A stretch of 63,841 nucleotides of DNA, filler included, from Olpidium bornovanus S191 (lineage: Eukaryota; Fungi; Olpidiomycota): the NCBI GenBank assembly GCA_017911155.1. It is 36 parts of 36 records of this genome, joined end to end, with 100 filler letters (N's around TTAATTAATTAA, not from the genome) between each part and the next. Parts side by side here need not be neighbours in the genome. Positions count along the whole stretch, not along the records: positions 59,978 to 61,034 come from JAEFCI010009940.1; 35 more parts are not named here. One strand, 5' to 3'. Shown piece after piece: positions 7,244 through 62,979 of this stretch. Each line of letters begins with the position of its first letter. Position 1 is the stretch's first letter. A program made the translations under genes and the position numbers. The notes beneath the pieces were generated by a model. That model made no database searches. It saw only the letters and a program-made list of their open reading frames with translations, and was not told the origin of the DNA.

Positions 7244-8200
7244 ATGGCGGCGGCAGCAGCGGCAGCGGCGGCAGCAGGCACTGCGCGGCAGCGGCGACGA
7301 CGACGGGCACCGCCGCTCGCCGGCGGGCCGCGCGCGAAGAAGGCGCCTGCCGTCAAGCCCCGCGCGGACGACGGCGCCGGGGAGTCGAACGGCGAGCAGG
7401 CCGGGGGAGGTGCGCCGTTGTCGGCGGGAGATGCGAGCGAGGACTCCGACGATGTGCCCGACGACGACGACGGCGGCCACGCCAGAGCCGAACCCTCAGC
7501 GGACGGTGAAGAGTTGCTTGGAGACAGCTGCGACGAGGGCGACGGCGATGACGACGGCGAGGTGGACGACGACGAGGGCGACGGCGACGCCGACGGCCAG
7601 GTGGATGACGACGACGACGACGACGTGGACGAGGCGGAGGTCGCGGCTTACCTGAACATGCAGCAGGAGAAAAACGCGGCGGCGGCAAAGGAAGCGGCGG
7701 GACCAGGAGGCTCCAAAGGGCAGCAGCAGGAGAGGCGTGTCATAAACGACAAAAAAGCGATACTCGCGCTTATCGATGAGATTAAGTACCCGGACTCGAT
7801 GCCGTGGGAGGAGCTCATGGACGTGACCACCGACGAGCCGGTGAACGTGCCGGACGTCAATAACGACCTGGAGAGGGAACTCGCCATGTACGTTTGCTGA
7901 AGCAGGCGTAGGCGAGCGGGCAGGTTGTATTTAGCAGCGGCAGCTTACGGCGGAGCTGCACCGTCGGGGCGCCCCGGCCGGCGCACCCGGTTCGCGGCCT
8001 GCAAATTTGTCAACGGCCCTCCAGACGTTATCCCCCGTTTCTAACAGCGTTTTTTCCTGGGGGGCGTACTGAACACTGGCAGCTACACGCAAGCGAAATC
8101 CTCCGTGCTGGTCGGGCGCCGCCTGCTCCTGAAGGCCGGCATCCCGTTCAGCAGGCCGGACGACTACTTCGCGGAGACCGTCAAGTCGGATTCGCACATG
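7244..8200 (+). CDS. EBP2: rRNA-processing protein Ebp2, 5' part, spliced
   Basis: Acidic N-terminus, then RVINDKKAILALIDEIKY..MPWEELMDVT...DLERELA | IYTQAKSSVLVGRRLLLKAGIPFSRPDDYFAETVKSDSHM; truncated at gap. Confidence 0.92.
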
Positions 8201-8510: not shown

Positions 8511-9741
8511 GAAGTCTTCGCTCCTTCTCCGGTTCACGGAGGACCAGTTCGACAGCGAGGTCAACGCCACGATCGGCGTCGACTTCAAAGTGAAGAACAT
8601 GGAGATCGACGGCGTCACGTACAAGCTGACGATATGGGTATGCGCGCAGAAAACAATTATGCTTTCGACCAGCGCCGCCTTCGCCTCCCCGCCCGCTTCT
8701 TTTTTTTTTGCCCCGCCGGAAAGCGGAAAGTTTAACGGGAAAAGCCGGCGGCATTACCCCGTTTGCGAACTCCGCTCCTTTTCCACTGCGCGCACGCAAA
8801 ATTTTCTGGGGTGGATGCGGATCTATCGCGCATATCTCTCCAAGGACACGGCCGGCCAGGAGCGGTTCCGCACGTTGACCTCGTCGTACTACAGGGGAGC
8901 GCAGGGCGTAATCCTAGGTAGTGGCTTGCTTTTTTTTTTTACTGCGGGGAACTGCCGCCGCCGGGGGAGAGAAGCGACAGAGAGAAAGGGAGAGGGGCAG
9001 ACTGGACTTTTTCGTTTACCGGGGTGGCCGCCGCCTCCGGTGTTCTTTTTTTTTTCTGCCCGTGAGGCTGAAAGACCTATTCGATGAAACCCTTTCCTTT
9101 TTTTTTTTTCGCAAAGTGTACGATGTCACCCGGCGGGAGACTTTCACGCACCTCGAGCAGTGGTTTAACGAGCTGACGACATACGCGTCGTCGCGGGACG
9201 TCGTGATCATGGTCGTCGGGAACAAGATCGACCAGGAATCCGACCGGCAGGTGAGCAGGCAGGAGGGCGTCGACTTTGCTCGCAAGCTTCAGACGCTGTT
9301 CATCGAGAGCAGCGCAAAAACGCGCGTCGGCGTGAAGCAGACGTTCGAGGAGCTGGTGCAAAAGGTACACCCGGGTGTGTTGCAAGGGAGGGAAGTGGTG
9401 GCGGGCAGGGGGCGAGGAAGTGGGGGGGGGTGGTGTTGGGAGGAAAGAAAGGGGGTTCCACGTGAATCGGGAGGGCGGGGCTCGTTTGTTCGCGGCAATC
9501 CGGCTTTTGTCTCCGGAAACCTGGCGTTACCCCAATCGGAAAGTCTCCCGGCGCGTGCTCGAACGCGGGCGACGCGTCGCGCTAAGTCACCGCGCTTGCT
9601 TTTCGCTTGTCCTTCGTTTGACCCCCAAAGATCGCGGATACGCCGTCCATATGGAAGCGCCAGCCGGTCCCCTCCGGCGCAAGATCCGTCAATTTCGCGA
9701 CCGAAGCGGCGCCGGCCACCGGCGGCGCCTGCGCTTGTTGA
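8511..9741 (+). CDS. RAB18: Rab18 small GTPase (4 visible exons)
   Basis: KSSLLLRFTEDQFDSEVNATIGVDFK, DTAGQERFRTLTSSYYRGAQG, VGNKID, ESSAK; last exon 9631-9741 IADTPSIW...GGACAC* ends in a CXC prenylation motif; CTAAC branch point at about 8484. Confidence 0.95.
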
Positions 9742-59977: not shown

Positions 59978-60654
59978 CATGATGTCCTCGAGGTCGGGGC
60001 TCAGCGGGCGGCCGTCGGCGGTGGCAGTCGAATAGATATCAGTCATCTTCGCGATGATTTCTGACAACTCCTTCTGGAGAGCCGGATCGGTCGGGGTTCC
60101 ACTGCCGTCCAGCCGCAGGGAGAAAAGTTGGCGTTTTTCATCATCCGTTAGGTCCGGAAACTCTACATACTTTCTCGACTCATTGACGAACGAGAGGTGC
60201 TGTTGCGGTGATGGACGGGAAGTGAGATAACTGGGCCATTCGGAATTGCGTCGACTGCCGTCCCACAAATATCTAGCAAAGCGATGCGGGACCAACCTTG
60301 TCGTTCCACATCAGCTGGGCCGCAGTGGCCAACTCCCGGTTCGCGTCGGTAAGGTTTGTGGCATAAGCCCAGTCTGCCTCAGTCACGGTCGGCAGAAATT
60401 CTGAAAGTTCTCTGTCGCTGGAGCCGGGCGGAGAAAGCGGAGTACGCGTTTTGTCTGATTTCCGTACCTTTTGCCACACACCGGAAGCGAACGCGTGAGG
60501 CGCGCAGAAACACTCACACCCGCTCGAGGAACGCCGAAACGCCGCCGCCGTCGAGGAACGCCGACGATCCCGGCCGCTGGACGCGGAAACGCGGAACGGC
60601 AGCTCGGGCGGCTGCGCCCAGCCCGACCAGGGCCACAAGGCGGACAACCCTCAT
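59978..60654 (-). CDS. Angiotensin-converting-enzyme-like peptidyl-dipeptidase (peptidase M2), secreted, 5' three exons
   Basis: Exons 60654-60518, 60417-60297 and 60199-59978 splice in frame: MRVVRLVALVGLGAAARA...AFLERVDRELSEFLPTVTEADWAYATNLTDANRELATAAQLMWNDKHLSFVNESRKY...EKRQLFSLRLDGSGTPTDPALQKELSEIIAKMTDIYSTATADGRPLSPDLEDIM. The HEXXH region lies beyond the gap. Confidence 0.85.
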
Positions 60655-60971
60655 TCCGGCACGGTCGATCTAGCTCGCGTCGTCGCCTCTTGGCCCCGAT
60701 CCGCCGATTATCGCCTGATGACGCGCGCGGGGCGGGTAAGTGGGGGGAAAAGGGGCGCGCGCTTAGGCGCTCTCGTGCGGGCGCGCGAAAAATGCGCCGG
60801 GGCTGCGAGGAAAGGAAGTCGCGCGTGGCTCGGCGCCGGACGGGAAGGAGACGTGTGCCGCCGCCCTTTTCCCCTCCCCGGCCCCTTTTCCCGAGAGGGG
60901 AGTGTGGGGGAAAACGGGGTCGGGGCGGGGGGGCCAGCGGGAAGGCGCGCGGGGGGGGGGGGGGGGGGGGG

Positions 60972-61023
<52 letters not shown>

Positions 61024-62979
61024 AAAAAAAAAGGNNNNNNNNNNNNNNNNNNNNNNNNNNNNNNNNNNNNNNNNNNNNTTAATTAATTAANNNNNNNNNN
61101 NNNNNNNNNNNNNNNNNNNNNNNNNNNNNNNNNNCATGGTCGCTGAGGCGCAAGTCGCGGCGGTTCGGTGCGGTTGCTTTAGGGCGTGGAAAATGGGTAT
61201 GTTCGCAGAGTTTTCAAAGTTCACGCGGTTTTGCGGCAGATTTTTCGGAGCCCGAGCACGCTTTATATACCCGCGCAGCACCTCACACTCGCAGGTTCCA
61301 CTACCCTTCGAAAAAAAACACAGCAAGTGACACCAACGAGCACAGAATGCTGCTCATCCGGCAACAAGGAGAAAAAGGCGTTCCCGAAAAAGCGACCGAC
61401 GACTGCGTGACAGCGCGGGACCGGCGCGTGAAAGAAGCGCGACGACCCGCGACTTCGTGGCGGTATTCTTTTGAGAACTCTTGCTCCCAGGGGGCCGCGA
61501 TGTCCGCACCAGAAACGCGCCCGGCGGTCCCTCCGAAGTTTCGGGACAAACGGCGACGGCGCACAAAAGTTGGGCGATTAAAAAGCAGGATTGGTGGAAG
61601 CTGGCGCCAGGGGCGACTCTTCATCAGGAACGCGTAAAGTTTCCGTGTCCGCGACGTTCCACGTTTCGGGAGCGACGACCTGCGCACTCGCGCCACATGT
61701 TTGCGTTCCAACCGCATACGACTTTCAAGATTACCAAAGAAACCTTCCATCCGGCCTAAACGAGCAAAGCTTCTCAACATAGAGCCTTAGATAGTTTTTG
61801 CCATCTCCCAACCGGAGAGGGATTGCATACGGGAAGGCTTCTGGCTGCGCTCAATGATGCCGTTCTTAGCGCAATGCGCATAATAACTGCTTTTTTTTTC
61901 TAAATAATGGAGTGCGCTCTATATTTCACCCGCTTCCATGAATAAAACGACTGTTGCGGATGTTTGCCGGCGGCCTCGAGCCCGATCGAAGAACGGACGG
62001 TCCTTCCTGCGATGTATTTTGGTAGGTTGCCCTGTTCCTCGGGATCAAGCTCCCGGGCAACAAAGCGAGGATAAGCCGCTGCTGATATCGGCCTGCAATC
62101 GGCCCGTAAGCAATCCCATCACAAGGAAAGCAACGCGGATACCGCAGGCTTTTACGTCAACATGGAATATTGGCATGGCACAAAAGAACGTAACTAATTT
62201 CTTGGATTTTTGCAAAGAATTCCCGTCGGATGCCTACCAGAAACCGCCAGAAGAGGTGTAAGTGGATGTGGAATATGGCGTGTGCGGTGGCATACTAGGA
62301 GCCCGGCCTCCCGATGCGGCCGGCATGGTAAATTTCGCGGACTGCCGCGTCGTGCGGCTTTGCTGCCCCGAGCTGCGATTGCGGTTTTGTTCTCACGAAC
62401 CATGACTGCGCGCGCTTGCACAAAAAGCAAACACGGAAGAAGTTGCGTTTCTGTTCACAAAAAGGTCTCTTTCAGGAGAGTTGGGGGGGGGTTGTCAAAG
62501 AGCAAGTCGGGATTCCACATANNNNNNNNNNNNNNNNNNNNNNNNNNNNNNNNNNNNNNNNNNNNTTAATTAATTAANNNNNNNNNNNNNNNNNNNNNNN
62601 NNNNNNNNNNNNNNNNNNNNNGGGGGGGGGCAGAGAGAGGGGGGGGGGGGGGGGGGGGGAAGGGCCGGAGAAGGGGAACCCGGGGAGAGAGGCGGGGTTG
62701 AGCGGCGCGCGCGCTCCGCACTTCCCCCGCGCCCTCGGCCCAGAAAGTCTCACCAGCCGTCGGGGTAAGGAAAATTTCCGCACGTGACTCTTTTTCGCGC
62801 GAGGCGCGCGTGCACTTTGCCCCGGGTTTCTTTTGTGCGCGCGCCGCGTCCGCCGAGAAAGTTCTTTCTCTTTTTTGGCAGGTTTTTATTTTTCTTATGT
62901 TTTTTTTTTTTTTTTTTCTTGGTCGTTCGCCCGAGGGAAATAAAATCCCCGTGTGCGTATTTTCTAAGACGAGGCTTGC

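Follow-up and report, generated by a model that had tools for sequence, protein, structure and literature searches.

A microbial-eukaryote contig with the leader and first three exons of an expressed, probably secreted peptidase of family M2

What kind of gene lies on the contig of 1057 bases at positions 59978-61034 of the window (i.e., the whole stretch of DNA analysed, 63,841 nucleotides in length), and in what kind of organism does it reside? The question is raised by motifs of peptidase family M2, the family of ACE. To our knowledge, enzymes of this family have been studied almost only in animals, with few bacterial examples. In a full-text search of an open-access subset of the literature, M2 enzymes of fungi or protists were the subject of no paper, which is no proof of absence; the early matches to "peptidase M2" really concerned M20 and M24. 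The reading that best accounts for the data, to which we give a probability of about 85%, is that the contig is genomic DNA of a microbial eukaryote and carries, behind a leader, the first three exons of a gene that is expressed and encodes a probably secreted M2 zinc peptidase; this gene belongs to a small, intron-bearing clade.

The coding strand of the contig is the minus strand, on which the following features are distinguished:

60655..60900, minus strand: transcribed 5' leader; a 5' UTR of at least ~246 nt, 71% G+C, pyrimidine-rich on the coding strand
60518..60654, minus strand: exon 1; ATG, signal-like hydrophobic segment (MRVVRLVALVGLGAAARA...) and putative start of the mature N-terminus (..SAFLER plus two bases of a Val codon)
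60418..60517, minus strand: intron 1; 100 nt, GTGAGT...CAG, splitting a codon 2+1 (GT + C = Val)
60297..60417, minus strand: exon 2; first M2 helix, DRELSEFLPTVTEADWAYATNLTDANRELATAAQLMWNDK
60200..60296, minus strand: intron 2; 97 nt, GTTGGT...CAG, phase 0, after ...MWNDK
59978..60199, minus strand: exon 3, partial (contig edge at 59978); second and third N-terminal M2 helices, HLSFVNESRKY...KRQLFSLRL...ELSEIIAKMTDIYSTATADGRPLSPDLEDIM

The start codon at 60654 lies in the context GGAATGA, with a purine at position -3, and opens the sequence MRVVRLVALVGLGAAARAAVPRFRVQRPGSSAFLDGGGVSAFLER. It is preceded by an in-frame TAG six codons upstream, and no second ATG is found in the 380 nt upstream of it. 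In exon 3, the reading frame resumes after the CAG acceptor at 60200 with HLSFVNESRKYVEFPDLTDDEKRQLFSLRLDGSGTPTDPALQKELSEIIAKMTDIYSTATADGRPLSPDLEDIM and runs to the contig edge at 59978. The visible part of the gene thus comprises the first ~160 codons, which correspond to the non-catalytic N-terminal third of the protein, and the catalytic exons would lie beyond the contig edge. The exons have a G+C content of 56-73%, with a GC3 of 68-80%, and the introns one of 55-59%. The motifs from which the sequence-only reading had recognized an M2 peptidase (DWAYATNLT, KRQLFSLRL, ELSEIIAKMTDIYSTA, ATADGRP, and LSPDLEDIM) were all found where it had placed them. An exact look-up of the ORF of exon 1 gave no record, and neither an Rfam scan nor scans for bacterial promoters and terminators gave any match on the contig.

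Two further features of the contig deserve mention. Its end, at 60951-61032, consists of a run of 21 G's followed by runs of 49 and 9 A's, which on the coding strand is a T-run followed by a C-run upstream of the leader. This low-complexity tract may belong to a genuine promoter at which the assembly broke off, or it may have arisen artifactually during sequencing or assembly; the transcript contigs discussed below end at 60900. The plus strand at 60471-61034 contains long Arg/Gly-rich ORFs (e.g., 60471..61082, 203 aa) over the G+C-rich leader, but as genes these have no support, and they look like artifacts of composition.

Part of the sequence is present in 18 public runs from seven studies, most of them labeled organism A and some B and C, with a trace in a soil metagenome; the copies found under the three organism labels are more than 99% identical. 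In the Logan contigs of runs X1 (organism A, depth ~60) and X5 (organism B), exons 3, 2, and 1 are joined. These contigs skip exactly 60200-60296 ("skips 97") and 60418-60517 ("skips 100"), segments with CT..AC ends on the plus strand, i.e., GT..AG ends on the coding strand. In each run, a second contig covers the leader (60602-60900 in X1 and 60628-60825 in X5). The X1 contig also extends 71 nt beyond 59978, showing that the transcript continues past the contig edge. With X1 and X5 taken as RNA, the gene is spliced and transcribed. The three-exon model with GT-AG introns and consistent phases, originally drawn from the genomic sequence, is borne out by both joints to the exact base. A 24-nt "intron" (gttggt...gctag), which would keep the frame of ARYLWDG..., was considered as well and is ruled out by the transcript joint 60199/60297.

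The nature of these two runs matters here, as X1 is marked "RNA? (a guess: may be DNA)" and X5 is marked "?". If both were DNA, the intron-less form would represent a processed copy or an intron-loss allele in other strains, and the joints would be no sign of transcription. Such an explanation seems very improbable, since both joints fall on canonical GT..AG sites, and the X1 and X5 sets are divided into 167k and 416k short records (54-66 Mb), as is typical of a transcriptome. Moreover, the second contig ends at 60900, within the ATG-free leader, and the runs marked "DNA?" hold fewer words of the sequence than X1 and X5. In two other runs, X22 and X19 (raw RNA-seq, 2026, organism A), no reads on 59978-61034 were found in the ~6% of reads sampled (~10 million reads each), a sample that gives no verdict on expression. 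The difference between these zero counts and the depth of ~60 in X1 may stem from expression limited to certain conditions or stages, from a difference between strains, or from a mixed sample.

To which family does the encoded protein belong? In the profile and sequence searches, each exon was queried singly. Peptidase_M2 (PF01401) was the top Pfam match of exon 2 (E 0.0029, 16.8 bits, profile positions 16-51) as well as of exon 3 (E 0.099, 11.7 bits, profile positions 72-116), and the two matches are collinear, each being below the gathering score of 23 bits. The Pfam search that had been proposed as a check thus names the expected family for both exons in the expected order, although neither single-exon score reaches the cut-off. 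An exhaustive HMMER search with exon 3 among 1.84 billion protein cluster representatives gave 14 proteins at E <= 0.001. Six of these (P0001, P0003, P0006, P0008, P0012, and P0014; E 7e-10 to 1e-3) are M2 proteins, the best being P0001 (E 7.4e-10, 60% identity); the others are repeat-protein noise. All six were assigned to Peptidase_M2 by Pfam with E-values from 2e-54 to 4e-9, the lowest again being that of P0001, which also matched human ACE structures (E 6e-51). In BLASTP searches against the N-termini of bacterial M2 proteins, exon 3 showed 36-40% identity with E-values from 6e-8 to 3e-9, which refer to small databases. The segments DWAYATNLT, KRQLFSLRL, DIYSTA, and LSPDLEDIM align column for column with the relatives, with bacterial proteins, and with human ACE, and exon 2 aligns with the W.[YF].TN[IL]TD segment of the relatives and the bacterial proteins.

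Several other searches were less informative. Single exons gave no match in NCBIfam, and the sequence search of the PDB with exon 3 alone gave occludin and VTC4 at chance level (E >= 0.08). A feature search of the ESM Atlas with exon 3 gave clusters of portal proteins at 0.81, which is meaningless, and a word search with the 106-aa ORF gave no match in a length window that leaves out full-length kin. Even though single exons miss the Pfam threshold, membership of the visible N-terminal part in family M2 is established by homology. The collinear Pfam matches, the homologues of exon 3, and the placement of the gene in a clade of M2 proteins, as discussed below, confirm the earlier recognition of the N-terminal M2 helices in exons 2 and 3. 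The M3 dipeptidyl carboxypeptidases, such as Dcp, K-26-DCP, and Leishmania DCP, are alike in chemistry, being zinc gluzincins that remove C-terminal dipeptides, and are sometimes termed ACE-like (PMC5157764, PMC3235092). However, they constitute a different family, and neither the exons nor the relatives gave an M3 model in any Pfam scan.

All six M2 relatives of exon 3 are partial protein predictions from eukaryotic contigs whose genes contain introns. Proteins and loci pair as P0001/L001, P0006/L002, and P0012-P0015/L003, and P0008 and P0003 belong here as well. L001 is a metagenome scaffold of 15.6 kb from ENA, with neighboring genes encoding Nnf1, Rpb6, HAT-repeat, RRM, and FHA domains. 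The 32-kb contig L002 stems from a JGI metagenome, and its M2 gene was automatically named "peptidyl-dipeptidase A"; L003 and L004 are Logan contigs. Tblastn searches with bacterial M2 proteins revealed a complete M2 gene divided by introns in each of L001, L002, and L003. Their catalytic exons, which the contig studied here ends before, contain VCHASAWD and HHEQGH in all three loci, and in L001 and L003, FHEAIGD and two Cys pairs further downstream could be read as well. The relatives are 44-60% identical to exon 3 and share with it the Cys-less IYSTA..DG..L.PDL segment, signal-like N-termini, and spliceosomal introns. They come from other organisms, AT-rich to moderate in G+C content, in contrast to the GC3 of 68-80% found here, and introns differ in number and size. 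For example, the M2 gene of L001, on an AT-rich scaffold with the standard genetic code, has GT-AG introns of only 19 nt (7959-7977) and 20 nt (8682-8701), and the exon pieces of L002 are separated by gaps of ~15-200 nt. L003 contains a phase-0 intron (445-571) after ...ELEMNK, which lies within one codon of the position of intron 2 (60200-60296), both being preceded by a Lys that ends the first M2 helix. This weakly suggests one old intron that has slid by one codon; alternatively, it is a coincidence. A metagenome scan with exon 3 gave no matches, and one with the alignment gave two weak loci, L086 and L087. Among the best 120 matches of profile word searches on a bacterial template (A5 and A8), no full-length eukaryotic member was present, only Alteromonadaceae and Myxococcota being listed.

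At least 597 M2 loci were found in GTDB species genomes with catalytic patterns; the same scan with N-terminal patterns gave no matches. The bacterial enzymes, especially those of Myxococcota (L027, L029, L068, and P0136-P0255), are members of the same family, with a single domain of ~600 aa and an N-terminal export signal, and are 50-58% identical to the catalytic exon of the relatives. They differ in having no introns, and in the aligned bacterial templates the zinc motif reads HHELGH, whereas it is HHEQGH in the eukaryotic clade. A characterized example of a bacterial M2 peptidyl-dipeptidase is XcACE of Xanthomonas (PMC3235092).

Maximum-likelihood trees were used to place the gene among these proteins. 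In the N-terminal tree (239 columns and 51 rows, all of them non-animal), exon 3 falls inside a clade of seven rows (support 100/98), together with L001, L002, L003, P0008, P0003, and P0014. A long branch (0.58 + 0.24) parts this eukaryotic clade from all bacteria, and it attaches beside Myxococcota. In the tree of the catalytic region, the eukaryotic clade was recovered with a support of 97/95, and the split between the eukaryotic clade plus the Myxococcota-type proteins and the other bacteria with 100/98. Myxobacterial M2 enzymes thus appear to be the nearest of the sampled prokaryotic relatives of the clade. The phylogeny that had been suggested as a check thus covers the eukaryotic metagenome relatives and the bacterial proteins.

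Two observations on other proteins were made along the way. P0153 (725 aa, on an ENA contig of 4140 nt) looked odd but is an M2 protein of the bacterial type whose internal segment from LRIKMC to WWDLRLK is duplicated in tandem, giving a second HHELGH; the duplication is either an assembly artifact or real. Contig L021 has been binned as a Thermoplasmata archaeon, and its M2 gene falls among Acidobacteriota sequences in both trees, which is likely due to mis-binning or transfer.

How does the gene relate to the animal enzymes? Animal ACE, ACE2, and AnCE (structures 1o86, 7q3y, and 1j36) belong to the same Pfam family. The motifs W.Y.TN[IL]T and L.PDL are shared, as are HHExGH and HEAIGD when the relatives are included, and the two later Cys pairs of animal ACE are kept, as read in L001 and L003. 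In contrast, the gene lacks the first disulfide loop that animal ACE carries after YS.ATV (C-HPNGS-C). Where human ACE continues after YS.ATV with C-HPNGS-C-LQLEPDL, the segment here and in every member of the clade is five residues shorter and devoid of Cys residues (ATADGRPLSPDL). A rough motif count over 196 sampled M2 proteins of bacteria found the loop in 106, and it is visibly missing in many of the remaining ones, e.g., in Brevundimonas. The templates from Paraglaciecola and the delta-proteobacterium of L027 have it. Thus, the replacement of the Cys loop by ATADGRP, to which the sequence-only reading had drawn attention, is a real loss, but it is nothing special to this gene, as the loop is missing throughout the clade and from many sampled bacterial proteins as well.

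In phmmer comparisons, P0001 reached up to 146 bits against bacterial proteins vs. 94-105 bits against single-domain animal ACE and ACE2, and the catalytic exon of L001 scored ~254 bits against bacteria vs. ~232 bits against the C-domain of human ACE. The clade thus appears closer to bacterial than to animal proteins, a statement on similarity by bit score and not on the topology of the trees, which contain no animal sequences. With the first disulfide loop (Cys-x5/6-Cys after YS.A.V) deleted and a higher similarity to bacteria, the gene falls outside the subfamily of animal ACE and ACE2.

The N-terminus of the predicted protein consists of MRVVR, followed by LVALVGLGAAA and A-R-A. Kyte-Doolittle means over nine residues reach up to 2.5 over residues 3-16, just before the A-R-A sequence, so that the signal-like hydrophobic segment noted earlier was recovered in the hydropathy profile. 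Similar hydrophobic, signal-like segments are present at the N-termini of the relatives, and bacterial M2 enzymes likewise begin with export signals. Most likely, the segment is a cleavable signal peptide, although it may act as a signal anchor that is not cleaved. From these features, we infer the following mode of action. The hydrophobic segment encoded by exon 1 would direct the protein into the secretory route as a signal peptide and be cleaved off. In solved ACE structures, the N-terminal helices form a lid over the substrate channel, and the helices encoded by exons 2 and 3 would constitute the equivalent lid. Judging from the three relatives, the zinc site (HHEQGH...HEAIGD) would be provided by the downstream exons, so that the mature, secreted product would be a zinc metallopeptidase, probably trimming C-terminal dipeptides off short extracellular peptides. 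Signaling or host defense peptides, which the sequence-only reading had suggested as targets, would be conceivable substrates.

Whether the protein is catalytically competent depends on those downstream exons. Only the first ~160 codons are visible, none of which bears on the active site, and the gene could in principle encode a non-catalytic M2-like protein or be decaying. Animals do have such non-peptidase homologues of M2, among which ACN-1 of Caenorhabditis elegans, which has no zinc site, is listed (PMC3235092). Nevertheless, we consider a non-catalytic product unlikely. All three exons in view have open frames, are transcribed, and are spliced correctly, and exon 3 is conserved within the clade at the level of identity given above. 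In addition, HHEQGH is kept in all three relatives, and FHEAIGD and the Cys pairs are kept in both loci where they were read. An active peptidase therefore is the preferred reading.

In which organism does the gene reside? Its introns, its splicing, and its recurrence in seven studies speak against contamination, be it bacterial or sporadic, and the earlier view that it is a resident eukaryotic gene is upheld by the introns and spliced transcripts and by its presence in the 18 runs. The Cys-less loop and the pattern of the scores argue against an animal source. The host is probably a fungus. Among the relatives, L002 adjoins a gene for a 369-aa protein that matches only fungal Rtt109 histone acetyltransferases in the PDB, which suggests that this contig is fungal. 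The pattern GTNNGT is common at 5' splice sites in fungi, and both 5' splice sites of the gene studied here fit it, which is weak evidence. With a distinctly smaller probability, this is a real gene of a non-fungal host, i.e., an amoeba or other protist, or an organism traveling with the cultures or samples labeled organism A. The near-identity of the copies under three organism labels, together with the faint trace in the soil metagenome, would fit such an origin, and so would the zero reads in the samples of the two large organism A RNA runs. Furthermore, introns of 19-20 nt are unusual for fungi, and their presence in L001, the closest relative, indicates that the clade may not be purely fungal but reach beyond the fungi. 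On the other hand, the presence in 18 runs from seven studies, mostly under one label, speaks against a sporadic contaminant, and the neighbor of L002 and the 5' splice sites point to the fungi. A fungal host thus remains the reading that we favor.

What does the gene add to the picture of the family? Its assignment to M2 is routine, as automatic pipelines already name such fragments "peptidyl-dipeptidase A". It is a modest evolutionary curiosity within a well-known family and not a new kind of system, and it leaves the view of how the M2 family works unchanged. A more far-reaching interpretation, which we put forward only tentatively and consider rather doubtful, is that the gene represents an old eukaryote-resident M2 lineage, present in fungi and perhaps in other microbial eukaryotes, that stands apart from animal ACE and was acquired from, or shares its closest ancestry with, myxobacterial M2. 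If this is true, eukaryotes would have gained or retained M2 on at least two occasions, and the host organisms would secrete a still uncharacterized ACE-like dipeptidyl carboxypeptidase. As an expressed, intron-bearing M2 gene that groups with environmental genes beside myxobacterial enzymes, it provides a data point on the origin of the ACE fold, and it may encode a candidate simple secreted enzyme with substrates that are open to testing.
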